Notes under the pieces: generated by a model
Told to the model about the DNA's origin: nothing
Database searches by the model: none
What the model saw: the letters and a program-made list of their open reading frames with translations, nothing else
Origin: Podarcis filfolensis
Lineage: Eukaryota
Reading direction: 5' to 3' (one strand)
DNA: 64,000 nt
NCBI GenBank assembly: GCA_964270895.1
Contig: OZ185438.1
In this document: piece by piece, positions 714 through 38,444 of the stretch
Layout: each line of letters opens with the position of its first letter
Numbering within the stretch: the first letter of the stretch is position 1
Translations under genes and position numbers: made by a program

Positions 714-754
714 CTTGGGTACTCTGAGGCAGATTGAGGGCAAAGCACATAGCC

Positions 755-790
<36 letters not shown>
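755..790. repeat. (TTA)n microsatellite
   Basis: Seen directly. Confidence 0.95.
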
Positions 791-793
<3 letters not shown>

Positions 794-1701: not shown

Positions 1702-1931
1702 TACAGTGGTACCTCGGGTTACATACGCTTCAGGTTACAGACTCCGCTAACCCAGAAATAGTACCTCAGGTTAAGAACTTTGCTTCAGGATGAGAACAGA
1801 AATCGTGCTTCGGCGGCGCGGCAGCAGCAGGAGGCCCCATTAGCTAAAGTGGTGCTTCAGGTTAAGAACAGTTTCAGGTTAAGAACGAACCTCCGGAACG
1901 AATTAAGTACTTAACCCAAGGTACCACTGTA
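1702..1931. mobile_element. Tc1/mariner MITE family 1
   Basis: TIR CAGTGGTACC, TA TSD; reverse orientation. Confidence 0.9.
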
Positions 1932-2781
1932 GAATAGAATGCCTCATTTTATCTGAGGCATGTTGGAGGGTACGCTTTAGTCATTAGGCTGTGACTCTCC
2001 AAGTATTGCTGGGCGACAGCTGCTATCATACATGTTTATGGCCCTCCAACATAAGCTGGAGGGCCACAGGTTCCCCATCTATGTTTTAGGCTAAATATCA
2101 CTGAGTTTAAGCGTAAAGTCCACTTATTTGTGGATCACAAACTAAGGCTGCATGCTTCCTTGGAAATAACTCCCATTGAACACCGGCACCTATTTTCTGA
2201 GTGAGTATGCTTAGGATCACACAGTGCGTTTGAAGCAGAACCAGCAATTAATCAACCTCTTAGATTTTTCCATTGTCAATTCCAAAATGAGGATGCTGAC
2301 CACAAGGAATGGATAGAATTATGTCAGTTTCAGTTTCTCTCAGCTACTCGTTTTTCCCATCTTAAATTTAGTTCTCTATATTTCCACATCAGTTTGCCAA
2401 CGCTTTCCGAAAAGTCCTCATGAAAATCTATTGGCTTGTTGATACAAATTTCTCTTTTGGGTAAGAAATTTCTGCAAGCAATTTCCCCTGATATGCCCAG
2501 TTTTGCAAAGCAATTTCCCTGAACACAAAGTAGTTTTGTATGTTGATTTCACTAAGATATGAATATATTCTAGTATATGCATTTTTGTGCATATACTACC
2601 TGGCTGGAGACCTGCTAAGCTGCAAATGAAAAGAAGTGCAGGTTTTGAAGGATGTCTGTGTTTTGATTCATGCATTGCTTCAGGAAGTGAAGTTTCGGTA
2701 TAAAATGCAAACAGGTATTAGATGCAAATGAAATCAGTTCCCATGAAAACTGATTCCAATTTATCCCCCATCCCTACTTAC

Positions 2782-3057
2782 CACACACTTTGAGCGAGAA
2801 AATTTCGCTGTCATTTCCAAAAGCAAATGTATATTTCCCCTCATCATTTTCTGATAAATTCGTCATCTCTACAATCCCGTTCCTCAGGCACAGCCTTTTG
2901 TCACAGTCATTGCAACAGTCCATCGTAAAATTCTCCGGTTTAGAACAGTTCGTTTCTTTCATTACTAGGATGCCACTTCGATTTTTAATTTCCAAAGGAA
3001 AAGAAACATTGCCACCAGCATCACCAAAAAGCTGTTTGAGGTCCACACAAGTCACAC
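2782..3057 (-). CDS. Gene B Ig-V exon; rest of gene lies beyond the left edge
   Basis: ttgcag acceptor, GTAAGT donor, 276 bp open. KQLFGDAGGNVSF...NGIVEMTNLSENDEGKY...FSLKV resembles CD58/CD48 D1 motifs as recalled. Confidence 0.8.
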
Positions 3058-4210
3058 CTGCAACAGTAATAAAAGATTTAAGTAGATTTTTTTTTTAAAA
3101 AAAGCAGTTTATAAACACTATTAAATAAATAAATACATATTGAAAGCCACAGTAAGTCTAATCAAAGAAAAAGATGAGCAACCTCTCAGTCCAAGAAGAC
3201 ATATGAGAAATGTATTCTTCGTTTTCCCCCCCTTTTTAGCTCATAGCTTCATTTTATCTGAGTGAAAAGTCAGGGTGTGGGACGGAATCAACTCAGTATT
3301 GGTTACTAAGATTGAAAGCCTTAATTCATGAAATAGTGCAATTCATAATTTTATATGAGTGCTGATCCTTTCGAAGGATACTTGATGAGCCATTGCTGTA
3401 AATAAATGACCTAAATGTAGCTTTTAATTCAGGTAACATTTAATATATTTTTACAAGAAAGTATGTGGTTTGTCGGTTAAATAAATGTTGTTTTTCATGT
3501 AGCTTAAACTGTCACCCATAGTGTGTATGTATTTGAATTCATTACTCATTGGCCTCAAAAAATGTTAAATGACTTCATATGGTCCACAGATTTATACTGA
3601 TTACACCATAGAATGTTTAGAAATGGAAATAATCCCCACCTACTTAGTAGTTTAAGGAAAAAAAGAATCTAAGCAGTGTTTGCAAAACTGGATGAATTCA
3701 GGCTAGTTACTTTCCCTCACTGCAATTCACTGTCTCCAAAATCATGCACGGATATTGAAAAGGACTTGGAGTATTGTTTTCAAAAGGATTTTAAACTGGA
3801 AACCTATGTACATGGTACTTGGGCCCCTGAATGATTTTGAGATGTTTTCATCTAGTATTCTAAATTATTTGTTCAAGGTCATGCCGAGAGACAAGAAAAG
3901 AATCCCGGAATCATTGTGTTGACCACCACCCCACACGAAAAGCCCCGCAACCTCTTATTTCTCTTGCATTTACAAATGCAGTACATCAGGCAACATGGTT
4001 GCAATTAGTTTATGAGAAAATCTGTCTTACTTTGGAGTGACTGTCCATTTTCATGCTTTGGCGGTTATGACACCAGCATTTCCCTGAGTCCCGTCGACTA
4101 GCCTTCCTTTAAAGGAGAGGGGTGGCGGGGCTGAAATCTGAACGAAGAGGATCATTTCTGCTCACCTAGGCAAAGCAATGCCAATTTGATAAAAGAAAAT
4201 TCCCACTTAC

Positions 4211-9917: not shown

Positions 9918-12009
9918 AATACTCAGTTGCTGCAAAAGAAATCTCCACTTTATGAAGCTCTTTCATAGAGAGACGCTTTATAAAAAGGAGTGGGAACTGC
10001 CAGATGCAATTCTGTTTAACACTCTGAATAGGCCTCAGCAACTGCGCTTTGCATCTCCTTGTTAACTTTCCTTCTGGGAATCCTGTGTTGTTTCTCACTC
10101 TGCTGCTGAAAGGTGGGGTCTTGGCTGGCAGGTTGCTCAAAAATCTGCATGAGTCTGTCTACCTGGCCAGCCAGATAACAGAAGTCGCTTTTGGGTGGAT
10201 TCCAGCAAGGGAAGTGAAACAACCATGCTATCACTTTCTTTGAGACTGAAAGCGAGACGCTACGGATGATAAGATTTCCCCAGTTGCATTTCATTATTGT
10301 GGGCTGACTCTGTCTCACACTCTGCTCTATGGTCTCATTTTGTATGGAAAATTTCTAATTTTGAGAATTGCATGTGCGTAATTTGTCCTCGTTCATTCAT
10401 ATTAGTTTCTCTCTATCCACATGATCCATGCCCATAAGCTGTTGTGCACATTGAAACTTTTTTTTAGTTTGTGACTGAACGTGAGTGCACATCATTTGAA
10501 AAGCTGGGCTCAGATGAGAGGGGATGTGCATTGCCACGTACATCAGAAAGGAATACTCTGTATTGACCTTCTTGAAAGAAGGTTATGATTAAAATGAAAA
10601 AGGTGGTGAATCACCCAAGGCAGAGAGCAACATTGCTTAAACACAAATAAGATTTATTGAGAAAAGAAAAACAGAAATTCGGACTTATAGGAAAATCAAA
10701 GAAACATAAATTATCTGTTTCCTAATGACTTATGCTACAATCCTAACCATTTCTACTCTGACACAAGCTCTATCGAGTTTAATGGGTCTTATTCCCAAGT
10801 AACTTGGGTTAGCTAGCATTAACCATGAATTACGATGAACTACTTAAAAAGTGTAAAAGTTCACACAAAGTACTGGGTAACAAATCAGGGGTTGAAAGCT
10901 AAGAAGCGCAATCTTTTGGCATCACCATCCAGAAAGGCAAGAAGGCTCAAACTAGATTTCCAAGGGCAACATTTACAGTTTCAAGATGGCGGTTATTTTG
11001 GTTCACCTAGCTTTTGAACTGATGCAGATCTGACAGGTAAGTTAGCAGCTTTTACGTTCAATGTGACTATTTATATGGTCAAAGGCGGCCTAAGACCACA
11101 GTCTGCAACCACAGTTCTATATCTTGGTCATTAATGAATGATTCTGAAACACTTTATACTTACAGGTTTAGTACCTAGCAAGGGGATGTGTGTTTAGTCG
11201 TGGTTTAGGCAGGAAGCAGAGTAAAAGCCAGTCGTATACAGATCTATTTTCAATTTGGGCTGAAACGTTTGCTGTGGACAAGTCAGCAGGGTTTGCTTTT
11301 TTTTAGAAAATCAACTTTTGCTTTTCAATGCATACACTTTTAGTAACTAAATTACAATAAAACATGTTCATATGCCATTATATATATGGAAGATATATCC
11401 ACTCCAGTCCCGTTGCAAAAGCATAGCTTGAGCTTCTATAGTCTTAGATTAAAAGACTATAGAAACCTGAAGAATGACAAGTCTAGAAACTCATACCAAC
11501 AGCAATTTTAATAATGCATCCGCAATATACATAGACAAGGATAATTAATGATCAGGGACAATGCAAGAGGGAAAGTTGGATGATACACAATACAAATTAA
11601 ACATTGCTTATTTTAATCAGAACAATACAGTACAGTTAGGTCTTAACAAATTACTACATATTATTGTATCTATACATAAAACTCACCCCATTTGCTAGCA
11701 ATGTAATGACAATTTGCTGAAAGAGCAGTTTCTCATCATGATGAAGAGGTAAAATGGCCTTTTATTGTTTCATATTTGCAAGATTAAAGTTAGTAATTAG
11801 GTTTATTTTTTTACATAAGCGCACTTTGAAAGCTTCTGCCTAGCTACTAAATGAACTGCATCTTCTGACAAATGAGATAGCATGTTAAATAGAACTGGGT
11901 CTCAGATGATTTCAGAATTCCATTGTCTCTTTTCCCATCATACATGTGGGCTGGGTCACTGGAAGAAATGCATATTTGTTCTCTTAATTCGATTGCATCA
12001 TCAAACCTC

Positions 12010-12143
12010 TCACAGAACACAGTCCACAAGATCTGGAAGAACACAGCCGCCATCCCAGCAAACAGAGCTGTCACTCCTCAGTAGACTAGCACTACAATTC
12101 CTGACATTCATACACAGTGCTGGTGGTAAAGTGTTTTCTTTCT
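12010..12143 (-). CDS. Gene A probable terminal coding exon
   Basis: ttatttttctgttcag acceptor, in phase; EKENTLPPALCMNVRNC...DLVDCVL then stop. AATAAA candidates on the minus strand near 11760-11810. Confidence 0.6.
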
Positions 12144-12165
12144 CTGAACAGAAAAATAATATGCA

Positions 12166-12429
12166 TACAGTCATACCTCGGGTTAAAGTTGCTTCAGGTT
12201 GAGCGCTTTTGGGTTGCACTCTGCAGTGACCCAGAAGTAACGGAATGCATTACTTCCAGGTTTCCCCGCTCACGCATGCACAGATGCTCAAAATGACGTA
12301 ACGTGCATGTGCAGAAGCGGCGAATCACAACCCACGCACGCGCAGATGCACAGACACGGGTTGCGTTCTCTTCAGAATGCAAATGGGGCTCCAGAATGGA
12401 TCCCGTTCACATCCAGAGGTACCATGGTA
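12166..12429. mobile_element. Tc1/mariner MITE family 2
   Basis: Ends CAGTCATACCTCGGGTT / GAGGTACCATGG, TA TSD; homologous to the copy at 22624. Confidence 0.85.
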
Positions 12430-12454
12430 CATCTATAAGATATTTCTCACCCTG

Positions 12455-12545
12455 TGGTCTCCAAACTTTCCCAGCTTTCCTGCATTGCAGGGGGTTGGAC
12501 TAGATGACCCTGAGTCCCTTCCAACTCTATGATTCTATGAGTTCT
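12455..12545 (+). mobile_element. CR1 3' terminal fragment
   Basis: gggttggactagatgaccc...tcccttccaactctatgattctatga tail. Confidence 0.7.
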
Positions 12546-12573
12546 CCCTCTGTCTAAAACTGGGGTGAAGAGG

Positions 12574-12830
12574 AAGAGGAAGAAGAGTTTGGATTTGATA
12601 TCCAGCTTTATCACTACCCTAAGGAGTCTCAAAGCAGCTAACAATCTCCTTTCCCTTCCTCCCCCACAACAAACACTCTGTGAGGTGAGTGAGGCTGAGA
12701 GACTTCAGAGAAGTGTGACTAGCCCAAGGTCACCCAGCAGCTGCATGTGGAGGAGCGGGGAATCAAACCCAGTTCACCAGATTACGAGTCTACCGCTCTT
12801 AACCACTACACCACACTGGCTCTGGATCTC
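12574..12830 (-). mobile_element. tRNA-derived SINE (Squam3-like)
   Basis: The minus strand reads agagccagtgtggtgtagtggttaagagc (A box)...ggtttgattcccc (B box)...; (GAA)n tail. Confidence 0.8.
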
Positions 12831-13900
12831 CAGATGTTGTTGGAGTAAATATCCCATAATTCCTGATGGCCATGCTGATGAGATTGGATGCCCAACAACA
12901 TCAGGAAGCCCCACATGCCCCAACCCTGGTCTAAAAGAAAGAGTTGGTTTTCTCTATACAAGACTTGCCAGAGCCAGAGCCAGAGCCAGCCCACAGATGC
13001 GGTGGGGTTGTGCTTCTGCCTCAGGTGGCAGAAGTACAAGAGGCGGCACCCCATCTGCCCCACCACTTCCACCACCACCAAATTTCAATACGAGAGAGAC
13101 ATTCCAGCATGCAGTGCTGCCACTCGCTGGGTGAGAGGGGGGCATTCCGGCGGCGGTGGAAGTGGTGGGGCAGGAATGGTGCAGGGGCGTAGCAGGGGCA
13201 ACAGAGAGGGGACAGGAGACAGCACATTCCCATTTCACCTCACGTGGTGAAATGGGATGCGCTGCCCCTGAGACTTCCCTATTTTACCACAGCTCCAGTT
13301 GACACCTGTGCAGTGATCATGCTTCAAATGCTGGACATTTCTGCTGCTTTCACTGTATAGAGAGAAATTCCACCTAGTCCAGTTTTCTGTCCTCATAGTG
13401 TCCAACCAGATGCCTATGAAAGGCCCAGGAAAGTGTTGTTGTTCTCAAGTAATTCTTTCAGGCTCCCCACAGGGATCAGGTTGCACACTATGGGAACAAA
13501 ACTTCCAAAAATTACTTTTGTAAGTGTCCCCAAATTTCATGGAGGCTCGATCACAGTTAAGATCACTTTCAGCATATTTATATTTCAGACCTAAGCTGGT
13601 TTGTCTGCTAGTCATTCTCCTTCCCCAGAAACCTGATGTTCTGTGAAGATGGCCAGAATAATCAGAGAATCCTCAGCATGGTTCCCAGAAGGCTGTGGGG
13701 ATGTTAAACTAATATAAAACCTAGTATGTCTGCAAGATAGGTATGTCCTTAGACATTTAGCCAAGCAGTACAACCTCATCTGCCTATTGCCTTATAATTA
13801 GAAAAGTCCTCAGGATGCTCAAGAGATGCTCACAGCTAAACTATTTTAGATAAAAATGTGTACTTCCTGTCTGCTGTGTGGTTTGGTTTTGGCCACTTAC

Positions 13901-14050
13901 CTTGAAAAGTAGAGATATTTAAAAGCATGGGGTTTTCTGTGTTGGGAGCTGCTGCTGTTGCAGTCTCTTTTTCATTCCCAATCGAAAACCCTTGACCTTC
14001 TTCTGTGGTTTCTATAGCCTGTGGTTTCTGTAACTCTGGACTTGCAGTTG
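13901..14050 (-). CDS. Gene A cytoplasmic exon
   Basis: ctttttgctttcttgctcag acceptor, CAAG|GTAAGT donor, 150 bp, phase 1-1, open; ATASPELQKPQAIETTEEG...LNISTFQ. Confidence 0.7.
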
Positions 14051-17000
14051 CTGAGCAAGAAAGCAAAAAGCAGAAAGTACAACAACCATTGAAATTAAAT
14101 GCTGGGTTAGCACAACATTAACATATAACCATGTTGTAACACAGGAACAAACAAAATTTACTAAGTATAGGGGGAACAGGTTTTAGCATGATTACACAAG
14201 GTTTCTGTATACTATGGGGCTCACTCCCAGGTAAGTAGCCTTTTCTGAAGACCATAAATAGAGGATCCAAAATCTGCCTTGGGTCCTTAGTGGAGAGGGG
14301 AAAAACAGATTAGAAACAACAACAAGATGCTTGGAAAATGTAACTTGTGGGACCTCCTGATAAATACAAAACCATAGTGGCCTTTTTCTGTGAGCATGTA
14401 GCTCAATGTAAGCCAGGTCCATAAGAGGGCCAAGCTAGATAGGACCTGGGAGAAATGTGTGAAGCATTTCCTAACTGAAAAACTTGAATTGCAGGGGTGG
14501 GGTGCCCCAAATTTTGTCAAACCAGCTGCAGTGGAAGGGAGTGATCAGTTCCCCCATCACAAACTGCTAAAAACCACCCTCTCAAATCTGCTTTTTCCCC
14601 TGTAGGGAAATTTTGAGCCAGTTTTGACTAAGAAAACTACTCAAGATAGTAAAGTGCCTTCTCCCTCCTGCTACTGCTCCAATCACATTAGGGGGCAACA
14701 AGAGTGCATTAAAGGAAATTGTTGGAAGATACTTGATGTGCCTCCAGCTCACATCTAGTTGGACCCTCAGTGTATGTGCTGCACTAGAATAAACCCTTCT
14801 GACCACCAACAGTTGCACTGAATTCTCTAGAGACAGCAGACATGATATTTGAAGTTTCTTCTCTACGTGTGTGCATTCCCCACCACCACTCTGCCCCAAT
14901 ACCAGCACCATGCATCACTGCATACACCTGTGGTTAAAAACAGTATCATCAACCTCCATGAAAACTTTCTATTGCAAGCTAGCATCTCACACAGGGTCTT
15001 ATTTCAGCTGGTTTTAAACATTTCTGAGGATGAACAAATCCTTACATCAACTACCCTTGCAGCAATATTTCTTCATTAATTCTATGTTTTGATTTCTAGC
15101 AGCTAACACTGAATACTGTTCAAACTCCTTTACCGAAATTGCTTAGGGCAAATGTCCTAAACAGTTGGAGCACCAGTTGGGAGGGTGTGGAGTGCTGGAC
15201 TTGGACTAGGGAGAGGTGGGATCAAGTTATTGCCCAGTCTAGGTGGCCCATGAATGCTGCCTGAGATCCTTGGAAGAAAGGTGGGCTAATGTTTAATTTG
15301 AATAATAATAAGGAACAACAACAATTTAAAAAAATAGCAACAAGAAGGAGCAGTTGTCATATCAGACCCATTAAAATACCAGTTTGCCCATGTCTTAAGA
15401 TCTTCTGGAGAGATGCTGTTCCAAGTACTCTCTTTAATTGAGGTATGCTACTCTTTAAAAGAAAAAGAGGGCTTTTTTCCACAGTGCCTCTCCAACTTTT
15501 GAGTGCCTTCTCAAGGGAGACATGACTGGATCTGACATGACAAGCTTTCCTATTTGCTGTCCTATTTGCTCACACATGTTAGTTTGGGGGAGGGAGGGAT
15601 GGAATGGTTTATTTCTGTTTTTAGCTTTTGAGATATTTGTTTTGTTTCATTTATGTTTTGTTAAGCTGATTTGCTGATTTTAAGGTGTGTTTATATATTG
15701 TCCAAATTAATTATATTCCTATTTTTGGACCTGGCTCTAGAATCTTCTGTTGAAAGACGGTTGAGAAATATTTAAAATTTAAAAAAAAAAACTTTAAAAT
15801 GAGTCATTGTGAGTCATGATTCACTTATATCTATTGAATTCAGTGGTCTACTCTGAGTCCGCGGCAATCCAATAACAAATAAACAAATAAATAAATAGGG
15901 GTTGCAATGTTTCAGTTTTTAATTCATTAGACTAATGGATTTTTAAAGTATTTTAATCTACTAAAAGAGTGAATCAGGAAGCTCATTTATTTATTTATTT
16001 ATTTAAATTGGTTCCTTAATGCGAGTTACTTATTAAAACTGTGGGTGGCAAGCAGGAATGCCTCTTCGAAAATGACACTTGCAATGGCATATTGGGGGGC
16101 CTGTGGGCCTAATTAGACCTACCATGCCTCCTCATTAGACTTGCAAGGCAGTTTTTGTCCAGTCAAGCTCACCAGCTCTATGCCCAATTTATATGACATC
16201 ACATATGGGGCAGTTCAGGGCATGGCTGGACTGAAAGAGGGGTTGCAACTGACTGGCCCATCTCCAGAGATGGAGGTGGCTGCCCATGGGAGTGAAGGAA
16301 GAATGGAGGGAGGGAAGCACCAACTTGCAGAAAATATGGGGGTGCCCCCTAAATTATGCTCCACAGAGTTGGAGCATATGGGACCAGCGGTGCAATTTTA
16401 TACATGTCTACTCAGAAGCAAGCCCCACTGAATTCAACAAGACTTTCCCCCAGCAAGGCGTGTGTAGGGTTGCCACCTAAAGCACATATGGTTAATCAAG
16501 TTGCAGTAATTATAGTAATAAACAGCAGTTCAGATAGATGACAGTGCTGCCCAATGAGAAGACATGGCCCATTCACTCACTGAATTAGCTTTGTTTCTCA
16601 GAGTAGACCATGACATTGCCTTCTGTTCATGATATTGTTATAGGTGGGGGGAATTCCACTCACCCAAAAAAAAACCCTAGAAATTAATAAATGGTAGGAG
16701 TCTGATGATTTGGAGTATTGAAGGGAAGATTGGAGGCCTGTGGAAAAGTACAGGCTAAGGTTCCTTCCTGTCACCTGGGATAGAGGCATTAACATGAGAA
16801 AAGGTGTTGTTGACCCATCTAGGAAGGCTCTTGGGCCTGGGCAGATAGGCAGAGGTTGCCATGGTGATGGGGTATGTATCTGAGGTGGCACACAAAGAGA
16901 GTCTTTAGAGAAAGATGTGCTGGGAAGAAGAAGGGAAGAGAGCAAAGATCCATCTTGGGCAAGCTGGTTGAAGGCTGACTGGGAGAGATGCCTTGCACTC

Positions 17001-20000
17001 CAGTGCTGCATTGCTGTGGGGAACAAGTAAGAGCTGGACTCCCTCCATGCAGACTGAAGGTGTAAATATGCAAATAAAACAGATTTCTTAAAGCAGGCTC
17101 CACTACATCTTCAGTTCTCCAGAGGAGCTCAAACCATTGGTGAATGCCTGAAACCCCCTGGAATCTTGCTACTGCTTGGCAGAGAGTGGAGGTGCCGCCC
17201 AACCTTTGTAAGAATATGCACAATTAATACCTTGTTGGAATGGAGTTTAATTTATAAGGAAGGAAAACAGGCAGAACCATCACTTCTTTGAGGTGAGTAG
17301 TCTCCAAAACAACCAAAAATCCTTGCTTCCAGAAGCTGATCGGCAGTGCTTCAGAATGTCCTACTTACTAAACGGCACTGTTCACATGAGTATTCTGCTC
17401 ACTGAACTGTTAAATGCACTTGGTGGCAGCAGAACGTAGTGTATGAATCACCCCATAATGAATCACAAACTACACTTGGCAAAGATGCACCGACACGACC
17501 TAAATGCAAGCACAGTAAAGAAGCTCTGATAGCTTTCTGGTTTTTTATTTGTCTTTTAACTGGCACGTAAAACCATAAGAACTGCAGAAGAGTCTAGCTA
17601 GCTCCAATGAAACAGATTTATATTATTGTCTATGTATTCTCTTCCATTTATATCCCATCTTTCTTCCACCCTGAATCTAAACATACTTGTTGTTGCAGTC
17701 CAGGAACTGACCAGAACTGAATTTCATATATTAATTTAGGCCTGCTTCACAAATCATGCTAACACAAACTATGTGTGAGTGTGGAGGCTCCCAGAGAGGA
17801 GATCACAGCCACTTTGCTTCTCATCAGTTGTTTGGCTGCTGCACCAAACTGGGAGAGGTAAACCATGAGCCTAGGTTTGTACAACACATCAGCCCATACC
17901 ATGGAGTTGGAAAATAATTTCCCCTCAGGCACAACTGGCCCAAGACATTTCCCTCCCCCAACCCCAGCAGCTGCACTATAACTCTAAAACTAGTCTATAA
18001 CTGGTTTTAACTAGTCTGAGAGGCATCCTTGTGTACTTGGAAGGTCATAACTGTTGGATTACACATGGCTTTGTTGGTGGCCTTAAGCAGAAACTTAGGT
18101 TGCGGTGCAGTGCCAGACTGTGGGAACTGGAGGACCCATGGCCTTCTTCTGTAACATATGGCTTGGCTCATTTCTCTCTGTTGTCTAGAGCTAAGGATTC
18201 CCAACAGAATTTGCTTCCTTCTGCTTTCTGCTTATGTGGTCTAAATTATATAGACCAAACTTGAATCTCACCTATTGGTCTTTGGGTCCCTTTCTTCTTA
18301 TAGTTCTTTGAACCAACCCCTGAGGTATCTCCAAACCAATTTGTTCCAGACCCGCACACCTTGATTTGCAATAGAAACCTATCACACCAGAACCACCTTT
18401 GTTTGTTGTCCTCATACAATTACCAGGGAGAAAGGTCACACTTTTACAACCTCTTCCTGTCCTGTCCTCAACTGCAACATACAGAGGTCTCTTCACAGTT
18501 CTGGATCCCATGGAAGCCTAAACACATAGAGATTAGTGTACACTGGTTTGGCAGCTGTAATACTCACATCGGTCTTGCTTTCTCCTATAAACTACTGCAT
18601 AGTCAGCCACATTCTTTCTCCAACTTGCACGGCGTTGTCTTCTTGTTTTCCAGAGATCTTAAACCATATAAAATAAAAAGTGTGGAAATGGTTTTCAGTG
18701 AGAACTGAAAGCACACATTACTGGTGCAGTAGTCACTCCTAATATCCCCATCATCTCCTAATTTTATTGCAGGGGTGCAGACACAATCCCATTTCTTCCT
18801 TTGCCTTTTCTTTCTCTAGAGCAAATGACAGATGGGTCTCCTCCCTCCTGCCCATTACAGCCTTTGTGAAAAATGGCACAGATTTTAAGGGAAGCTTAGA
18901 ATGAAGTCTTTCCCCAGAGGTAACTGGCTTTCCAGCATATGCATACTGAAGAACCCTCAACCTATTTTCTTTTTAACAAACCAGCTTAGCACCACTTAAA
19001 ACATGGCCTGAAATATCCGTTGGCAACTTCCTCTTATCAGGGACCCTATGAAAGCTAAGAGGGCAGGAGGCACATGCGAGAAACGGTGTGGGCATCATTT
19101 AATTGCTCACAACCCATCACGTGCTCATAGCCTTTCAATGCTGGCAGAAGGAAAGGCGATGGATCCAATTATTTGTGTTTTCCCTCTTCAGAGGTTGAGT
19201 CTTGGTGGCTAGAGATGGGGGAGTTCAGTTCACATTTAAAGGCAAATCTATTAAATTCACAGAAGCAGAATTCACAGGTCCTTCCATCCAAAAAAAGGGT
19301 AATGAGACAGGGCAGATGGGCTTGATGATAGTATCTTCACCTCTTAAAAGATATCTACAGTAACTTGTTTTTTAATAAATGCATGCATATACTTGCTATC
19401 AGTTAAGTTCACAGGCCTACCTAGTACACTGTGATTCATGTTAGTAAGCAAAAATTCAACAATGGCAGCAATTCCAAAGGGGATCTTCAGTTGAAAATGT
19501 CTTACTTTAGACTCAAGGATGTGGCTCTCCCTGGCATGTGCCAGAGGACGGCAGAAGTCTGCATCCTGGTTTTAACCAGTCACAGTGCAGGGGACTGGAA
19601 GTGACACACTGCCCTGACACACTCACTGCAGCCTGATAAAAGATGGCAGGCCAGTGTGGGAGAGTGTGATGGCTGCAATAGCAGCAAAACACACAAAGAG
19701 GGGGGGGGACATGGAGAAAGAATTATTGACAAGTGCACAGCAACGAAGGACAGCTAAGAAGCAAGGAGGGAGAGAACCTCTGTCCCAGCGAAGCTGCTAG
19801 AAAATAATATTAATTGTGAGTGGGAGACGGGGGAAACAGAGAGGAGAAATCTGCAGCTACAGAGACAAAGCAGAGGCAGAGTGAGAGAGATGTGAGAGAA
19901 CAGCTGTGAAAGAAAAAGAGACAGCTGAGGTTACAAACTTCAGTAGAGAGCCAAGAAAAGCTGAGAGAAGTTGTATGGGCTGCTGCAATCGGAAAAACCT

Positions 20001-20412
20001 GTATGAAACCTGGAGCAAGGAACCATTCCAGGTCTTTGAGGCCTCCTGTGTGTTGGGGGGGCACAGGGGCTCTTACATGGAAGAGGAATCCTGACACAAA
20101 ATGTGTTGTTATGTCCGAACCAAGAACTGCATTCACTTCAACAAACTGAGCCAAGGTCAGAAACCACTATTTCAATAAACTATAGTTTGGCCCTACCCAT
20201 AGTTTGGCCCAATTCAGATGTAACCAATTATGGTCAGCTTAGCTCAGGAAGCAGATGAAGATCTCTTCCTCTGATGCATGTTGGAGGAGGACAGAGGACA
20301 AGAGGATGCTTGAGTCCACATTATGAGTAGGCTCACTCCTATTATGCTAAAGTATAGTTTAGAATTATGTCCAAACAGGTGTTATATACTGACCTCCATC
20401 TTGTGGGTGGGT

Positions 20413-20416
<4 letters not shown>

Positions 20417-20455
<39 letters not shown>
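20417..20455. repeat. (GA)n microsatellite
   Basis: Seen directly; about 190 bp into the intron after the gene A TM exon. Confidence 0.95.
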
Positions 20456-20459
<4 letters not shown>

Positions 20460-20644
20460 CAGTGTGCTTTGTGTGCTTGTAAAAGAAAGAAAAAGATCAG
20501 GCTGCACATGGATTTTGCATCTCACATGAGATGCAAAAGGTTTTATTGCCAAAGTAAAAGAAGGAGTTGCATTAGACAACCATCTGTACCTTTTGAGTGA
20601 CTTTCCCTCATTATGGTAAGCAAGGTAAGGCAAGGAAAGATTAC

Positions 20645-20776
20645 CTGGCTTCCTCTTCCATTTTCCAAAATGATATATACACGAGCCCAATATAATGAGA
20701 AACGCTGCAACAAGAGCTCCTTCTAAGATGAAGAAGATTAAATGAGGCAAACGTATTGTCTTCTGTGGATTAGGTT
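20645..20776 (-). CDS. Gene A transmembrane exon
   Basis: cattttag acceptor, CAG|GTAATC donor, 132 bp, phase 1-1; PNPQKTIRLPHLIFFILEGALVAAFLIILGSCIYHFGKWKRKP (hydrophobic run followed by a basic stop-transfer segment). Confidence 0.8.
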
Positions 20777-22623
20777 CTAAAATGAGAATGCAATTGTGAA
20801 AAGAATTACCTATTTTAACTCACTTCTGACAGGTAGTTTTACAAAGAGCTCTGTTTGTACTTTTAATGACATGCGGCACTGTGTAAAACATTAATATTAC
20901 CCTGTCAATTTATTTAATCATTTCAATTAACTACTTTGCGCTTAACTTTTTCATCAATTAACCATGTATAATAAATGTTACATGAACTCAACAGAGCCTA
21001 TAACTTGACGGGGGCGAGGGCAGCACACAAAACTATGTATTGTCATACATTGCTTGAAAATCAGCTTCAGTCTTATACAAGCTTTCCTGGGAATAAGCCC
21101 CACTGAACTGAATGGGGCTTACTTCTGAGTAAGCATGCATAAAATTCTAGACATATCGCACCAACTCTACCAATTCTAAAATCTTTTCATAAGGAACAAT
21201 CTTAGTTAAAACCAAGTGAATCTGTTATCAGACTGAGAAATACTCTTAAGTCTTTAAGTCAAGCCACTAGCCCATCCAGTACATTACCATGTGCTCTGAT
21301 TCATAGCAGCTTTTAAGACCTCAGAACAATGCCTGCTACTTGAAAGCCTTTTATCAAGGGTCTTTCTGCATGCAGAAGTATGTACTCTACCATGGAACTA
21401 TGCTTTCTTCCAGCAAATACGGACAGCTTTGTTAAGTATAATAGTTTAATGTACATTGAATTGGGGAGAGGGAATCTATAATGTGCCTATATTGCACTGT
21501 GTAGCATGACTAGAAATTTCCACTGAAGCTGAAGAAGAGCCTAACAAGTGAATCATGAAGTGGGGATGTATCTCTGTGCCTCGATCACAAGTTGTTTAGC
21601 TCACAGTCATATGAAAAGGATTGTATTGCAGGTCTATGCATATGCTAATCTGTAGACATCCATCTTGGGTGTGGTGCTTTCTTTGTTCCAAGCTACTGAA
21701 AAGAATGGATGTGTGAATCTCTGTCTCCAGCAAACAACCTGAGACTAATGGAGGCAGCAATGGAGGAGAGACAGAGCTTTGATTTCTAGCTGAGAATACA
21801 ACATATTTGTAATCTAAGATATTATGGCTTCTGCTGGGAGCGGTGTAAAAAATATGCATCTAACTGAAAGTAACTTTTATTGTTTTAAGTTGTTTGGAAT
21901 TAAGTTCTGTAAGTAAAGCTTCTGAGCCATATTTTGGCCTGGAGAATATTTATTTCAATAGAAGTGTCAGTTTTTATTCATCCAGGAGACTGGATATGTG
22001 CAATATTAATAGTCTCAATAGGGTTTCCTGCTGAAACATAACTTGGTTTTCATTCATCAGGTTCTCCCTTATTACATGAAGCAACACCTAGCACCTGTAA
22101 TTCCAGGTGCTTTTTGATACATTGTGTAAGGAGGGGGAAATAATCTCTGCTAAACTATGAATAACATTTTCAATTTTAGCTGCAAATCAACATTTCTAAC
22201 AGTTTCTTAGCAGTGAATGAACCCAATTTCTGTTGTTCCATTTTAAGGGACAGTCTACCACACTGTGGGCACATATGTCACAAAAAGTTAAGTGCCCATA
22301 GGTTCTGTTGATTAGAACAGAGCAAGTCAGTCCAATTGGCTTAGCATGGCCTAAAGGTACATAATGTTGTCAATGGCATGAATAAAAAAATAGTAATATC
22401 CTTCTATTCAGTAAAATTACCAACCTTCTTTTATTTGGAGGTAAGTGTTACTGTACTTTACTAACATATTTGCAGCAGGCTCTTGTCAAACAGAATGTAT
22501 GAAAGATATACAGTTACAACAAAATTACAGTACGTATAACTTCCAGTGGTTGGGTTGGCTATTGCACAGATGAACCTTGTAAATACTTGCTACTCATCTT
22601 AGAGCATGGGAATGCCCATCTAA

Positions 22624-22887
22624 TACAGTGGTACCTCTAGATACGAACGGGATCCGTTCTGGAGCCCCGTTCGCATCTAGAAGCAAACGTAACTAGCGAC
22701 GGCACGTCTGCACACGCGTGCATCGCTTTTCGCTACTTCTGCGCATGCGCGCGACGTCATTTTGAGCGTCTGCGCATGCGCAAGCGGCAAAACCCGGAAG
22801 TAACACGCTCCGTTACTTCCGGGTTGCCACGGAACGTAACTTGAACGCGCTCAACTCAAAGCTTATTCAACCCGAGGTATGACTGTA
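22624..22887. mobile_element. Tc1/mariner MITE family 2
   Basis: Ends CAGTGGTACCTC / GAGGTATGACTG, TA TSD, CpG-rich interior. Confidence 0.9.
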
Positions 22888-22892
22888 CTCAC

Positions 22893-23201
22893 GTGTAAGT
22901 TCCAGTTGAATTGTGTGACTGTACTGATACACACCATCCTTGGTAAACACTTCTGCTGTGTACTGTCCGATATCCTGCACATGAGTGGGACACAAGCTCA
23001 AGCTGCCATTGTTAAGTATAAGACATCTCTTGCTGTCGTCTATGCAAGTTGTAATATTCTGGCCGTCCACCTTTCCTATTGTGATATTGCCCTTCTTCCA
23101 AATCACATCATGAAGGTGGATGGCTTGTTTCGTGATCTTCATCTCAAGGAGCATACAATCACCAAGTGTTCCTTTGGTGAGACTAACCTGCAGTTTGGAT
23201 T
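22893..23201 (-). CDS. Gene A Ig-V exon 2 (tandem paralogue of Ig-V exon 1)
   Basis: gttcag acceptor, GTGAGT donor, 309 bp open; about 55% amino-acid identity to Ig-V exon 1 by hand alignment. Confidence 0.9.
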
Positions 23202-23604
23202 CTGAACACAGAGCAAAAATATAGCGGACATACAGTTTACTTCAATCCTCAAAAATGTGTGCATTAAGTAGATTTGAAATAATTTTGAAAACTGTTATTT
23301 CACTGAATTAAAATATTTCAATTTCAGGGGTGCATTTCAAATTTCAGCCATGAAACTGAAAGCAAAGTAGTAAAGGCAACTCTCAGGGAGCTATTCAATT
23401 TGAAAATTATACTACAACGCCTTTTAGCTGCATAATGTAACTTCTCTGCCCTCTCCCCTCCCCATGTGCCCTAAATCCGCTCCTAAATGTGTTCCTCTAA
23501 TTCTCCAGCTGTTCTGGCTATTATACAGCTGAATGCTGCAAATGCATGGCACTTATTTTATAGGAATAACACACAGTCCCTTAGAGGGCCTATCTGATAC
23601 TTAC

Positions 23605-23913
23605 GTGTAAGCAGCAGTTCCTTTCCATTACTGTATTGAATGTGTCCATCCTCAGTATATGCTGTCACTGTATAATGCCCAATATCGTCCAACTGAGTGG
23701 GACACAAGCTCAAGGTGCCATTGTTATAGATAAAACATCTTTTGCTATGGATTGTACAGTTTCCTTCATTCTGACCATTGATCATCATCCCAATCAAGGC
23801 TTTGCCTTTCTTCCAAATCACGTTGTGAATGTGGATTGCTGGGTTCCTGTTCTCCAGATCAAGGAGCATACAATCACCAAGCGTTCCATTGATGAGGCTA
23901 TCCACTTTGGATC
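23605..23913 (-). CDS. Gene A Ig-V exon 1 (CD2 domain-1-like)
   Basis: acttag acceptor, GTAAGT donor, 309 bp open. GTLGDCMLL...VIWKKG...NNGTLSL...DDIGHYTV resembles CD2 D1 motifs (G-L-G, W-K, NGTL, D-G-Y). Confidence 0.9.
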
Positions 23914-26099
23914 CTAAGTATGTCAATAAGATGCAATGGGAAGACATTTAATTCATTAACACCCAAATTGAACAAAGCATACCAATTCCTAAAACTGTGA
24001 TTTCATGAAATCAAAATGTTCAGATTTCAAGAGGACATCTAAAAATTTCAGACTCAAAACACAGCACAAAAGCAAATTCAAATCTCCATAGTAAGACATG
24101 GCTGGTAGAATTCATTCCCCAGCTGTAATCAACATAATTTCACACTTTTTCAGAAGTGAAATATGACAGCTTTTAGCATAGAACATCCATTTTTAGCATT
24201 CTTATCTGACATAATAAATCCCAGGAACGTTTATACCCAATATATCTTTTGTTTCTTTCTTTGTTTAAAATATTTTATCTGACTCTTCAATTATTCCAGG
24301 GTGGTTTACAAATTGCTCTTAAAACAGTAAAGCACCAGTAATTAATATCTATCCTTTCATTGTAAGTAGTTGCAGCACCACCAGGTTTTATCCAATTGGA
24401 TTCAAAGAAACCGGGAGTGGATTGTTCAAAATGGTGGGTGTAGAATGCCCTCTTGAATCCAGTAATTGTGTCACTGGCTGCTTCTTCCAGACAGTCACTG
24501 CATGTTGAAATAGTCAACCCAGACTCAAGTTTTTCCAAGCCTACTGATGTGCCAGTATGGTGGGACCACCCCCATAAAATGTTGAAATCCCATTAGTATG
24601 CAGTGCTGCAGCTGTCATGGTTGGACACAACTACCTATCTACATGCTCATCTGATCATGCCATAAATAAGTTTGACCATGATTCCCTTCTCTCAGTAAAA
24701 CATGTATAGAAAAAGGGGCATGAGCTCTGGCAAATCCTCTTTACCACCTGGTTAGTCACATGGTTGTGTGTGCACAGTGGGAGATAGCCAGCCACTGTTC
24801 CTGCAGTACACTGAATTATTATTTTACATCCAAGCAGAGTTCTATGATAAAAGAGGTTTGCGAAATTTCAAAATGTTGGAAATGGACAAGAGCTGTCTCA
24901 GCTAAAGAGACAGGTAAAAATAGTTGAAGTAAATAAATAATAGGCGATTAAGTCTAACTCCTTGCCACTGGTCATGATTCTCCACACACTAGCATCCTGA
25001 CCCCTGAGCAGTCCTGACCCCTGAGCTGACAACAAGCAGAAAACAGACTCAAAATGGACAAAGCGATAAATATCTAAAATGTTGTTAAACAAGCTATATG
25101 CTCTCTGTAACATGTTCCCTTTTCCAGGCAGTCTCACCAGAGTATTGACTTTTGCGTGGAAAATCAGCAGATTCATCCAAAGCCTTATTTGCTCGCATGC
25201 CATCACCAAAAACTGGACCAGAAATATAAAAAATAATAACATTAAGAAAAGCTGCATATCAAATGGTTTCTTTCCACCATATGAATAGATAACCATAAAT
25301 AATACTACAATTTTAAGGCAGAAATGTATTAGTTTTAGAACATGAACCTGGAAGGCAAAGTTCCTGTTTCCTAGTTGCCTCCTCATTTTGGAATTGACAC
25401 AAGGCTTTGGACATGGGCATCTCATGGACTGGTATGAAAGCAAGAATGCTGGATTGGATGAGAGTTTGGTCTGATCCAGAAAGGCTCTTCTAATAGTTTT
25501 ATGTAACTATTAGAGACCTTACAACCAGCTCCAGATTTTCTTCCATCCCATCACAATGACAGATGTGTGGACTTTAATCATAAATTTTGACAAAAATATG
25601 TATCCTTTCTTTCTATACCTGTGATTTTTTTAAAAGGCATGTTGTTTTTTAAACATATCTGCAATCTCATTGACTTCAGTTTCTTTCTGTGATCTAAGCA
25701 CCGTTTTCAAAATTACCTTATTGTTTTGTCCATTATCTTATTATATTAAAGAGATTTGGGGGAGGGGGTTGACCAATCTAGCCAAATACATTTGACTCCT
25801 CTTTTACCGAAGGACTAAATAAGCAATTTCTAACATCAATAGTAATACTGTGCATTAAACTTTTTGAAAATTTAAGTATGATTCACCCTTTAAAAATGTA
25901 TCCCATTCATACACCACTTACAGTTCTGCTTGTTGGATTTACACTGCATTTGATGCAATTACAGCAGACTAAATCTTAGTACTCTGATATACGACAGTCA
26001 CTGTCTAATCCTACACATAAGCATGACATACCAAGTCACTGACTTGGTAATATTTACTTGGTTGTAGTTCATTCACATCCAAGCCAAAAAGAAACTTAC

Positions 26100-26163
26100 C
26101 TTGAAGAACAAGTATATAAACCATTGACGGGACAGGAAAAATAGAAAATGCTTGAGAGTTCAT
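26100..26163 (-). CDS. Gene A (CD2-family-like receptor) signal-peptide exon
   Basis: ccaaaATG start; MNSQAFSIFPVPSMVYILVLQ plus G, then strong donor CAAG|GTAAGT; phase 1 matches the next exon. Confidence 0.75.
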
Positions 26164-27014
26164 TTTGGTAGGATGCTGTAGCATGTACATCAGAACACAA
26201 CATCCTCAGAAACATCCCTACAGTAACAGAGCTTCCATAGCATTGCCTAGAAAAGATAAAGGGCTGTTCTATCTTGATTTTAAACTCTTCCTCCTAGGTT
26301 CAGTGTAACTTGTCAAAACAGAGAAGCATGGGAGAGTCGGTTCTTCAAAACAGAAGCAAGGTGGTTTCAACCACTGTAAGAAATACTCATGCAAATTGTT
26401 GGTAAATGTGTTACTCACATGCCTGAATGTACAGAAATAGTACCTTGTAAGGCAAATACACGCGAGAGCAAAAAATAGAGATCAAAGATAAGAGCTACAA
26501 AGAGCAGAGAGATGTGGATGTCCAGTCCATGATTCAGAGTGGGGAACCTGAAGCAAGTGTTGAGTTGGGGTGTAATATTTAATGAGACTTTAGTAATTAA
26601 AGTTATAGCCACAGCAGAGCATTTTTACAGCAAATCCTATACATGCCTATATAGAAGTAAGTCCCACTGAGTTCAGTAGGGGTTATTTCTAGGTAAGTAG
26701 ACATAGCATTGATTATATAGATTCAAACTCCAATAAGCCAGTGCATTGTACCCCTAACTTGTTGACCAAACTGGAATGGTGATGTGTGAAATAGCAACCA
26801 TATTGAGATAGCTAGAAAATAATGCAATGTACCCAAGAGTAGACTCAAATATTAGTTTTCTAATAAAGTCACTGACTCCGAGCAGACCATTTATTTAATA
26901 TATATCGAACTCTTCCTTCCACATAACCAAATTCCAGGCAATGTACAGCTATTAAAACATATTCTATTATAAAGCCCTATATGGCTAAGGTCCAAGCTAT
27001 CTGAAATACCACAT

Positions 27015-38413: not shown

Positions 38414-38444
<31 letters not shown>

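Follow-up and report, generated by a model that had tools for sequence, protein, structure and literature searches.

A gene for a probable member of an uncharacterised V-only, CD2/SLAM/CEACAM-like receptor family in the lizard Podarcis filfolensis

A 64,000-nucleotide stretch of the Podarcis filfolensis genome (assembly GCA_964270895.1, contig OZ185438.1; hereafter the window) contains a gene, gene A, that encodes two tandem V-type immunoglobulin domains. Judged by its sequence, gene A is a squamate member of an uncharacterised V-only family of CD2/SLAM/CEACAM-like receptors of non-mammalian jawed vertebrates. We consider it likely that this placement is correct and that gene A, in this Podarcis-like lacertid, is spliced, codes for protein, and is functional. 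The receptor family is unstudied; the lizard gene is already predicted but unnamed. It is not unique. A preliminary description of the window had proposed a lineage-specific receptor of unrecognised architecture; RefSeq already predicts orthologues in four other lacertids (LOC114595955 in Podarcis muralis, LOC128412891 in P. raffonei, LOC118085352 in Zootoca vivipara, and LOC117045096 in Lacerta agilis), and models exist for P. lilfordi by transfer. The RefSeq entries are computer predictions, all labelled 'uncharacterized protein', and a literature search with six LOC identifiers returned no paper mentioning any of them. Protein identity between these orthologues and the window is approximately 90% or more; both V exons, the transmembrane (TM) exon, and both 3' ends are present in the window, and the differences are point substitutions only, 20 of them coding in the comparison with P. 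raffonei.

All six exons of the preliminary description exist: they lie on the minus strand, have AG...GT borders, and together give an open reading frame (ORF) of 1098 nt (365 codons). The first ran from an in-frame ATG at 26163 to 26100, and the other five have the borders given in Table 1. The exons are real, but the gene model was incomplete, as two in-phase coding exons (exon 1b, 75 nt, and a cytoplasmic exon of 90 nt) were absent from it. An additional in-frame ATG lies upstream at 26190 and is the start codon in the RefSeq models of congeners. The resulting eight-exon ORF is intact in the window and encodes 429 aa; in both length and exon order it matches isoform X1 of P. muralis and of P. 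raffonei in RefSeq. Exon 1b occurs in all Podarcis and Zootoca models. The 90-nt exon (93% identity to RefSeq isoforms by tblastn) and the upstream ATG are shared by the RefSeq models of P. muralis, P. raffonei, Z. vivipara, and L. agilis, and by the P. lilfordi models transferred from P. muralis RefSeq. The donor of exon 1 is GTAAGT, in phase 1, and the 5' UTR extends to at least 26241 (an RNA contig of run X4 spans 26100-26241 and is spliced at 26100). The alternative last exon, which belongs to the 400-aa RefSeq isoform X3, is also intact. RefSeq isoform X2 lacks 18 residues through use of an internal acceptor in the TM exon; isoform X4 lacks that exon altogether and is a TM-less form.

Table 1. 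Features of gene A and its V2-TM intron in the window.
Feature	Coordinates	Strand	Evidence
Coding exon 1, start codon(s) and signal peptide	26100..26190	-	Sequence; spliced RNA contig, run X4
Exon 1b, 75 nt, phase 1-1, 25-residue N-terminal extension ahead of V1	25138..25212	-	RNA, models, AG/GT borders
V1 exon, 309 nt, membrane-distal CD2-like V-set	23605..23913	-	Pfam, AF2, Foldseek, RNA joint to V2
V2 exon, 309 nt, membrane-proximal V	22893..23201	-	RNA joints 23201>23605, 20776>22893; model
Interspersed repeat in V2-TM intron	22624..22885	.	RNA depth, loose ends, joint 22623>22886
Stalk and TM exon, 132 nt	20645..20776	-	RNA contig over whole exon (run X2), model, tblastn
Cytoplasmic exon, 90 nt, phase 1-1	18568..18657	-	tblastn, AG/GT borders, open frame; gene models only
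Cytoplasmic exon, 150 nt, ends in NISTFQ	13901..14050	-	Sequence, tblastn conservation
Last coding exon, 134 nt, stop 12012-12010	12010..12143	-	Sequence, tblastn, alignment
Alternative last exon, 15 codons, ...ETMEF then stop	11912..11958	-	tblastn 100% over 15 aa; AG acceptor

Transcription was assessed in small, coded RNA runs (X1, X2, and X4) from species related to that of the window. A contig of run X1 splices V1 to V2 (joint 23201>23605), and contigs of runs X2 and X4 splice V2 to the TM exon (joint 20776>22893), both with GT..AG ends on the minus strand; in run X2 the whole of V2 is joined to the complete TM exon. A run X4 contig splices exon 1 to exon 1b (25212>26100) and not straight to V1. 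The GT..AG joints at these three junctions come from three organisms, and RNA junctions of this kind were what the preliminary description had proposed to look for. The three tail exons (90, 150, and 134 nt) lie outside the RNA evidence and are placed by gene models and conservation. Because the V1-V2 and V2-TM splices are seen directly, no C2 exon is used. Scans of the introns with tblastn and HMMs detected no C2-like and no further V-like or Vc exon. The V-V-TM layout without a C2 domain, the central claim of the earlier description, is thus real and transcribed. The V exons are nearly identical in size and phase, the usual look of mutually exclusive exons, and the six-exon model was made without transcripts, so that the layout might have been an annotation or assembly artefact produced by such exons, by the fusion of two genes, or by an overlooked C2 exon. 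We regard this as highly improbable: V1 is joined to V2 within one RNA contig and V2 to the TM exon in two runs, neither a signal-peptide nor a TM exon separates the V exons, the scans of all introns revealed no further Ig exon, and the same layout recurs in Pogona and in five other lacertids, in assemblies made independently.

The V1 and V2 exons share 70% DNA identity and 56% protein identity. V2 is a tandem duplicate of V1 and sits where CD2/SLAM members carry their C2 domain. That these are CD2-family-like V domains was borne out by a profile search of PDB sequences and by Foldseek. The best whole-domain profile matches were CD2 domain 1 (~1e-12) and the CEACAM1 N domain (~4e-13), followed by SLAMF6, CD84, CD48, and CD58 at 1e-7 to 1e-8; in Pfam, V1 gave weak Receptor_2B4 and V-set matches. 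The AF2 model of V1 (mean pLDDT 88) placed rat and human CD2 domain 1 on top in Foldseek (TM 0.82, 21-29% identity), then 2B4, NTB-A, CD84, and CEACAM1, and among Swiss-Prot models it matched CD2, SLAMF8, and Ly-9. A full-length model of the P. muralis orthologue consists of two beta sandwiches, the second being V2, one TM helix (271-301), and a disordered tail; residues 1-57 have low pLDDT, and the exon 1b extension is predicted to be disordered. V1 has three N-x-S/T sites and cysteines at B14, C''52, D59, and E70. Both V domains lack the canonical B-F disulfide, as do the V-set domains of the CD2/SLAM family (CD58, CD48, 2B4, NTB-A, CD84, Ly-9). The cysteines form two co-varying non-canonical pairs. 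Those at B14 and E70 co-occur in 15 of 15 Vb-type domains covering both positions and in no other domain; those at C''52 and D59 co-occur in 11 of 11 squamate domains and nowhere else. None of the compared domains has a cysteine at the canonical F-strand position.

A single-sequence HMMER search returned 56 proteins at E<=1e-3. The named relatives belong to lizards, alligators, turtles, birds, frogs, bichirs, sturgeons, gar, teleosts, and sharks; no mammal was among the named matches of this one search, about 20 long matches of which lie outside the named set. The family V signature comprises W-K-K, N-G-S-L, and D-x-G-x-Y. Non-lacertid homologues have two to three such V domains, the same TM/juxtamembrane pattern, and the same [LI]STFQ tail motif. 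The lineage-specific receptor first suggested is not supported: the gene is no invention of lizards, V-only homologues being present in Pogona, in alligators, turtles, and birds, and also in frogs and sturgeons. A domain tree unites all squamate V domains in a single clade (98/92), which is sister to the Vb clade of archelosaurs (turtle, alligator, bird; 98/94), and Vc is a separate clade (97/92) with zero squamate members. Turtles, alligators, and birds have the domain order (Va-)Vb-Vc. The tree shows two changes in squamates, the loss of the membrane-proximal Vc and a duplication of the Vb exon, that gave the V-V layout; the particular Vb-Vb' arrangement is therefore squamate-only, and the receptor family as such is not. 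The archelosaur homologues (Anas LOC101800308, Dromaius LOC112979290, Alligator LOC102561689, Pelodiscus LOC142820268, and Caretta LOC125631814) are all 'uncharacterized', and sequence and architecture alone point to orthology with gene A. They share with it the V signature, a Vb with the B14-E70 pair, the absence of C2, a TM segment followed by a W-H-F juxtamembrane pattern, the NISTFQ block, and D-C-x-P-P-[DE]-F tail repeats. Unlike gene A, they retain a distinct Vc, birds add an N-terminal Va, and they lack the C''52-D59 pair and both lacertid exons (1b and the 90-nt exon). Their tails are far longer, with approximately 17 CVPPAFDD-like repeats in Caretta and an ITSM/ITIM-like motif at the end in birds.

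The TM helix of gene A includes a Glu, and the basic residues KWKRK behind it form a stop-transfer stretch; by tblastn the TM exon is 40% identical to turtle TM exons. A cytoplasmic tail is present as first described, but it is longer than the about 100 aa first given, and the 90-nt exon puts tyrosines into a tail supposed to have none: its polybasic segment includes an RRAS site and the sequence DYAVVY, with two tyrosines (Y-x-x-V). Tail alignment revealed blocks common to the family. The 150-nt exon is 60% identical to Pogona, 50% to Pelodiscus, and 36% to Alligator (a weak match, E=0.18), and its [LI]STFQ motif is found from sturgeon to birds, with frog relatives carrying LSTFQ at the C-terminus or LATFQ near the end. 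The lizard tail ends in CVLPDLVDCVL, one degenerate copy of an acidic Cys-Pro repeat; turtles and the alligator have this repeat in expanded form.

Gene A lies 12 kb downstream of ILDR2; the human ILDR2 gene is at 1q24, within a few Mb of the SLAM cluster. Synteny with the archelosaur genes was not confirmed: in a sparrow, no family exon was found within 10 kb downstream of ILDR2, and the flanks of the duck and alligator loci carried no information on the point. The human neighbourhood of ILDR2 is one point in favour of a rival reading, in which gene A is the squamate orthologue of CD2, of a SLAM-family gene, of chB6/Bu-1, or of a CEACAM, with a derived ectodomain. The CD2 and CEACAM1 matches agree with such an origin, as do the ITSM/ITIM-like terminal TVYASI or IQYASI of bird homologues and the automatic naming of fish relatives as CD2, Ly-9, CEACAM3-like, and PSG22-like. 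The 'PSG22-like' and 'CEACAM3-like' names arise because rodent PSGs repeat V-like domains in tandem; rodent PSGs with several N domains are a precedent for such repeats. In CD2/SLAM proteins the second domain is a C2 with two disulfides, and in gene A it is a second V. Gene A further differs from them by two extra cysteine pairs per V domain, by its position beside ILDR2, and by a tail with no ITSM (T-x-Y-x-x-[VI]) and no CD2-type proline-rich motif. With CEACAM/PSG proteins it shares an N-domain-like V fold without disulfide. In reptiles, the common wall lizard among them, CEACAM genes occupy a locus flanked by TOMM40 and LIPE and encode IgC domains (4-16 in CEACAM1) and ITIM/ITAM tails (PMC13278318), whereas gene A lies elsewhere and has no IgC domain, ITAM, or ITIM. 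The avian B-cell alloantigen chB6 is likewise an orphan: this sauropsid type I receptor is CD2/SLAM-like, has two Ig-like domains and no clear mammalian homologue, and similar genes are reported in crocodilians, turtles, snakes, and lizards (PMC11882424, PMC4031500); its tail is acidic and proline-rich (PMC11882424). Its orthologues are defined by a CCC palmitoylation site and a PxxP (PPMP) site (PMC11882424). The CCC motif was in no family protein checked, and by these motif descriptions, neither site being found, the family is set apart from chB6. Orthology to any of these named genes is accordingly unlikely, and the V-only family remains our preferred placement. As a separate observation, the RefSeq accessions of alligator chB6 orthologues (PMC11882424) are 18-22 away from those of the family's alligator genes, a weak hint of linkage.

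Compared with P. raffonei, dN/dS was approximately 0.8, a value derived from only 20 coding substitutions, and exon identity (98.4%) barely differed from intron identity (97-98%). Purifying selection is thus not demonstrated at this distance. These values would fit a decaying remnant of an ancestral Va-Vb-Vc receptor, a transcribed unitary pseudogene in the making that is free of selection, as would the loss of Vc, the reduction of the acidic repeat tail to one degenerate copy, and a weak 11-residue Vc-like match (FFSVAWNKEST) within the V2-TM intron. Twenty substitutions are, however, too few to show relaxation. The ORF is intact, the eight exons and their splice sites are conserved in the window and P. 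raffonei, and the RefSeq or derived models of P. muralis, P. lilfordi, and Zootoca have complete ORFs (that of Lacerta is shorter). Across lacertids and Pogona each domain keeps all four cysteines, the tail motif is conserved as far as fish, and RNA is correctly spliced in three organisms. Decay is therefore quite unlikely, and a functional gene explains these data better.

The predicted product of gene A is a type I membrane glycoprotein of 429 aa. Its signal peptide and a short, disordered N-terminal extension are followed by two tandem CD2-like V-set domains and a TM helix, and the cytoplasmic tail, of approximately 130 aa, is disordered. Two non-canonical disulfides, probably paired as B14-E70 and C''52-D59, may stiffen the V domains. 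We propose that the protein acts as an adhesion or recognition receptor, possibly at the leukocyte surface; by analogy with CD2 and the SLAMs, the GFCC'C'' face of its distal V domain could contact a ligand in trans. The tail might serve signalling or trafficking, with the polybasic juxtamembrane region, the Y-x-x-V site, NISTFQ, and the acidic Cys-Pro motif at its end as candidate elements. A TM-less form and one with another C-terminus would arise by alternative splicing.

RNA contigs from many loci carry the interspersed repeat of the V2-TM intron, which is very abundant in them. RNA depth reached 300-4000 with many loose ends at 22622-22830, a joint with non-canonical ends (22623>22886) was present in run X1, and the repeat is missing from an intron-retaining transcript contig of organism A.

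Gene A, the minus-strand CD2-like receptor gene, lies in sequence free of any N and with a G+C content of ~37-49%, as in ordinary vertebrate DNA. The six exons of the preliminary description were all recovered with AG acceptors and GT donors at the claimed minus-strand coordinates, and their joined open reading frame measured 1098 nt. The exons and the frame of that model were real, and two coding exons had been overlooked, exon 1b and a 90-nt cytoplasmic exon; the six-exon join had nevertheless stayed in frame because both are phase 1-1. With these two exons and the upstream ATG included, the window encodes an intact protein of 429 aa, which is the length of the predicted isoform X1. The 150-nt cytoplasmic exon was the sole candidate of matching size and phase to combine a good polypyrimidine acceptor with a GTAAGT donor. 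Between the exons of the membrane-distal (V1) and membrane-proximal (V2) V domains, identity is 70% at the DNA level and 56% at the protein level. The 90-nt exon contributes a polybasic segment that includes RRAS and DYAVVY, and the tail of gene A is therefore not tyrosine-free. A dinucleotide microsatellite (~20400-20450, minus strand) lies just 3' of the donor of the transmembrane (TM) exon; it translates as (SL)n or (RE)n and enlarges the open reading frame around that exon.

Features of gene A and its surroundings in the window
Feature	Position	Strand	Remarks
Upstream in-frame ATG	26190	-	orthologue proteins mapped on window
Gene A exon, 64 nt	26163-26100	-	AG/GT borders checked in sequence
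Exon 1b, 75 nt, phase 1-1	25212-25138	-	orthologue mapping and RNA joint to exon 1
V1 exon, 309 nt	23913-23605	-	AG acceptor and GT donor
V2 exon, 309 nt	23201-22893	-	AG acceptor and GT donor
TM exon, 132 nt	20776-20645	-	AG acceptor and GT donor
Cytoplasmic exon, 90 nt, phase 1-1	18657-18568	-	orthologue proteins mapped on window
Cytoplasmic exon, 150 nt	14050-13901	-	good polypyrimidine acceptor, GTAAGT donor
Last exon, 134 nt	12143-12010	-	sequence borders
Alternative last exon	11958-11912	-	orthologue proteins mapped on window
ILDR2 orthologue, last exon	38228-38941	-	partial mammalian ILDR2 matches, 47-49% identity, 95% of length
ILDR2 orthologue, V-domain exon	63007-63465	-	
Gene B V exon, CD2-like	2774-3055	-	signal exon near 4270; 8 kb downstream of gene A
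Reverse transcriptase ORF, 508 aa	7685-9211	+	Pfam RVT_1, E 8e-36; between genes A and B
Retroelement ORF, 480 aa	27177-28619	+	between gene A and ILDR2; no Pfam match

Public databases already contain predictions of gene A, which belongs to a broad family that is as yet unstudied. When V1 was used as query in an exhaustive HMMER search, a 411-aa protein spanning both V domains was returned, and cluster look-ups identified it as the "uncharacterized protein" LOC128412891 of Podarcis raffonei. Further orthologues were LOC114595955 of P. muralis (isoforms of 429, 411, 400, and 385 aa), two P. lilfordi entries, LOC118085352 of Zootoca, and LOC117045096 of Lacerta agilis. Six LOC identifiers yielded no literature match. 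Soluble and alternative-tail isoforms may also be produced, a prediction that comes solely from the RefSeq models.

Transcription was followed in the assembled contigs of four small RNA-type runs, which came from three related organisms and were placed on the 5.8 kb between 20500 and 26300; the evidence consists of assembler contigs from relatives, not of reads from the individual that provided the window. The joint between V1 and V2 (23201>23605) was present in one 701-nt contig of run X1, the joint between V2 and the complete TM exon (20776>22893) in a 695-nt contig of run X2 and again in run X4, and the joint between exon 1 and exon 1b (25212>26100) in run X4. All three end in CT..AC on the plus strand, that is GT..AG on the minus strand. 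The contigs carry both the V1-V2 and the V2-TM joints, and V1 and V2 are therefore used in tandem and not as alternatives; the V2-TM joint likewise means that no exon is inserted between V2 and the TM exon. Of the junctions in the proposed model, V1-V2 and V2-TM are present in related-species RNA, and gene A is a transcribed V-V-TM gene with CD2-like V domains. The X1 contig extends from V2 into the intron and omits 22624-22885 with non-canonical ends. This segment is a highly abundant interspersed repeat with very high depth and many loose ends in all four RNA runs, and we read the contig as intron retention in a species without this repeat copy. Several indels also distinguish the V2-TM intron of the window from that of P. 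raffonei.

A hidden C2 or third V exon was the main alternative to the V-V layout. Searching the window by tblastn with 15 family proteins gave only V1, V2, the TM exon, the 150-nt exon, exon 1b, and the V exon of gene B, the downstream neighbour. Hidden Markov models of fish C2 domains and of Vc, the membrane-proximal V domain of archelosaur (turtle, alligator, and bird) homologues, were run on minus-strand open pieces of gene A of at least 25 aa; they recovered V1 and V2 only, and all else had E > 0.1. An additional exon of either kind was rejected on these two scans. The claim that gene A has no C2 exon was thereby borne out: the V2-TM joint occurs in two runs, the introns hold no C2 match, and the second domain is itself a duplicated V. 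The observation stands, and a V-only architecture is unusual for the CD2/SLAM/CEACAM superfamily. In the V2-TM intron, at the place expected for a lost third V exon, 11 residues (FFSVAWNKEST, 21705-21673, minus strand) resemble the archelosaur Vc C-strand FFQVVWKKENT. This match is isolated and marginal (E ~0.01-0.1), is not collinear with other weak matches, and is at most a hint of a dead exon.

The proposal of a lineage-specific receptor did not hold, as V-only relatives occur in other reptiles, birds, frogs, and fish. Among the relatives at E<=1e-3, Pogona has V-V and frogs have V-V-TM; the models of Alligator and turtles contain two V domains, those of duck, emu, plover, and penguin three, and those of bichir, sturgeon, paddlefish, and gar 2-4, some with one C2. 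Teleosts and sharks were represented as well. These proteins have been named automatically as "uncharacterized", "CEACAM3-like", "PSG22-like", "CD2", or "Ly-9". No mammal was among the family matches whose names were looked up (HMMER, E<=1e-3; all but ~20 of the long matches). Word-indexed protein searches with a full-length orthologue and with a 16-sequence family alignment returned lacertids, Pogona, duck, and goose only, and so added no further members. As defined here, family members have at least two tandem CD2-like V domains with W-K-K, N-G-S-L, and D-x-G-x-Y, followed by a single TM and a tail with [LI]-S-T-F-Q (STFT in sturgeons), and all of these features are found in gene A. Tetrapod members are without C2, whereas some fish members have an extra C2.

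A maximum-likelihood tree of 38 domains placed all squamate domains in one clade (98/92), sister (98/94) to archelosaur Vb; this domain stands in the middle of the bird proteins and comes first in the models of alligator and turtle. The archelosaur Vc domains formed a separate clade (97/92) with no squamate member; the branching order of Pogona V1/V2 versus lacertid V1/V2 was left unresolved. Gene A belongs to a wider V-only family and has a squamate-specific domain history. Judged from the domain sequences, the simplest history would be that Vc was lost and the Vb exon duplicated in the squamate stem or soon after.

Pfam matches to V1 were weak (Receptor_2B4, E 0.014; V-set, E 0.17). When a 41-domain family profile was searched against PDB sequences, the best whole-domain matches were the CEACAM1 N domain (~4e-13) and CD2 domain 1 (~1e-12, covering profile positions 5-98), followed by SLAMF6, CD84, CD48, and CD58 at 1e-7 to 1e-8; titin and Robo entries ranked higher only by summing several domains. 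AlphaFold2 folded V1, with the family alignment, as a nine-strand sandwich (mean pLDDT 88). Foldseek placed rat CD2 (1hng) and human CD2 (1qa9) at the top with a TM score of 0.82, then 2B4, NTB-A, CD84, and CEACAM1; among Swiss-Prot models the order was CD2 of horse, rat, and human, then SLAMF8 and Ly-9. The CD2-like character claimed for the V domain was accordingly upheld, with CD2 domain 1 as top structural match. A model of the full-length P. muralis orthologue contained two sandwiches (~residues 58-158 and 164-261) and one helix (271-301), with low confidence at 1-57 and 309-429.

D76, G78, and Y80 never vary across the 41 domains, and conservation of W33, G65, and L67 is 90% or higher. 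The F-strand position after D-x-G-x-Y is V or A and never the canonical Cys, which is absent in 41/41. In all 15 Vb-type domains spanning both positions, and in no others, Cys B14 is accompanied by Cys E70; Cys C''52 and D59 likewise co-occur in 11/11 squamate domains and nowhere else. Because these pairs strictly co-occur, the V domains of gene A probably carry two extra, non-canonical disulfides (B14-E70 and C''52-D59).

The tail alignment consists of three blocks: the TM with a W/Y-H-F juxtamembrane segment, an Ala-rich segment with (N)[LI]STFQ at its end, and the D-C-x-P-P-[DE]-F repeats. In gene A, NISTFQ is encoded at the 3' end of the 150-nt exon. The [LI]STFQ block is found in Pogona, Alligator, Pelodiscus, Dromaius, frogs, and sturgeons; frog proteins have a C-terminal LSTFQ, or LATFQ near the end, and those of sturgeon and paddlefish end in LSTFTY or LSTFTC. 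The D-C-x-P-P-[DE]-F repeat is single and degenerate at the lacertid C-terminus and occurs ~17 times in Caretta. Turtle homologues (Caretta caretta LOC125631814 and Pelodiscus sinensis) contain 8 to ~17 tandem 8-residue acidic cytoplasmic repeats, with units of C/F-V-P-P-A-F-D-D or G-P-P-E-F-D-D. We know of no binding partner for a PPxF-acidic repeat. In birds the tail terminates in an ITSM/ITIM-like motif, TVYASI or IQYASI. The tail of gene A has DYAVV with Ala at -2 and no proline-rich repeats. A downstream ITSM exon was also considered and rejected, as a scan for T-x-Y-x-x-V/I in the minus-strand frames of 20600-4300 gave two matches only, both in stop-broken frames. The product of gene A may act in leukocyte cell-surface adhesion or recognition via its distal V domain, and its tail could signal or be sorted via the Y-x-x-V site, NISTFQ, and the terminal acidic Cys-Pro motif.

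Gene A resembles CD2/SLAM receptors in an N-terminal V-set domain without the canonical B-F disulfide, CD2 domain 1 and then 2B4, NTB-A, and CD84 matching best, but differs from them in having neither a membrane-proximal C2-set domain nor a tail with a SLAM-type ITSM or a CD2-type proline-rich region. Among CEACAM/PSG proteins, the genes of the common wall lizard and other reptiles lie at a TOMM40/LIPE-flanked locus and have IgC domains (PMC13278318). In contrast, gene A adjoins ILDR2, has no IgC exon, and has a tail without ITIM, ITAM, or ITSM; by locus and domain content it is therefore not a CEACAM (PMC13278318). The avian CD2/SLAM-like orphan chB6/Bu-1 lies <20 kb from CD2 on chicken chromosome 1 (PMC4031500), and its orthologues share a juxtamembrane CCC palmitoylation motif and a conserved PxxP SH3-binding site (PMC11882424). 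CCC was found in none of the fetched family proteins nor in the protein of the window, and PxxP was absent from the lizard tail; chB6 orthology was rejected on these defining motifs. Accessions of the alligator chB6 orthologues (PMC11882424) are 18-22 away from those of alligator family genes. This proximity is a lead for linkage of chB6 with the family, not evidence.

Comparison of gene A with P. raffonei gave 5 synonymous and 15 non-synonymous differences (pS 0.018, pN 0.015, ratio 0.81), and dN/dS is uninformative on constraint at such a distance and with 20 substitutions only. Whole-gene DNA identity was ~97%, and 98.3% in the 5' half. We regard gene A as functional because the eight-exon open reading frame is intact in the window and in P. 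raffonei, other lacertids have complete gene models, splicing is correct, and the cysteines and tail motifs have been kept over hundreds of millions of years.

Receptors of the CD2/SLAM/CEACAM type set thresholds of lymphocyte adhesion and activation and are often exploited by pathogens. To our knowledge, what is known of them is almost all mammalian, and there the ectodomain rule is V then C2. Non-mammalian vertebrates keep a V-domain-only branch with its own conserved tail motif, and its lizard member is without a SAP-type or ITAM-type signalling motif. Gene A is a concrete, transcribed test case of how far synapse-scale spacing depends on the V-C2 rule, an orphan candidate beside chB6 among sauropsid receptors without mammalian counterpart, and a clean example of a receptor remodelled by exon duplication and loss; it will be of modest practical use until either its ligand or the cells expressing it are known. 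A fuller reading, which we offer tentatively and rate slightly below an even chance, is that the unstudied V-only CD2-like [LI]STFQ family is at least as old as bony vertebrates and was lost in mammals, that the squamate ectodomain was rebuilt by loss of Vc and duplication of a disulfide-bearing Vb exon, and that the family would stand as a separate branch within the CD2/SLAM/CEACAM superfamily, having a ligand and a signalling adaptor of its own.

Gene A is positioned beside ILDR2, its upstream neighbour, which lies on the same strand 12 kb away in the window; the last exon of this ILDR2 orthologue includes a run of ~13 Gln. In P. raffonei the gene A orthologue is 9.5 kb downstream of a gene with V-set and LSR domains (product 643 aa). 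Human ILDR2 maps to 1q24.1 and is not part of the SLAM cluster. In neither duck nor alligator did the 10-kb flanks of the homologue contain an informative neighbour, and no family exon was found within 10 kb downstream of ILDR2 in sparrow; the duck homologue is on a 207-Mb chromosome record. The downstream neighbour of gene A, gene B, is also CD2-like. Its V exon is Cys-rich, is without the usual Trp, and is 96% identical to that of P. raffonei (product 344 aa); the remainder of the gene lies beyond the window start. An Atlas search with this exon gave generic V-set clusters only, and one with the ILDR2 last exon was uninformative. Gene B could represent the chB6/CD2-like gene of squamates, and its product might bind that of gene A. 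Both intergenic regions contain a plus-strand retroelement reading frame, and the 480-aa frame resembles the C-terminal portion of a LINE ORF2.
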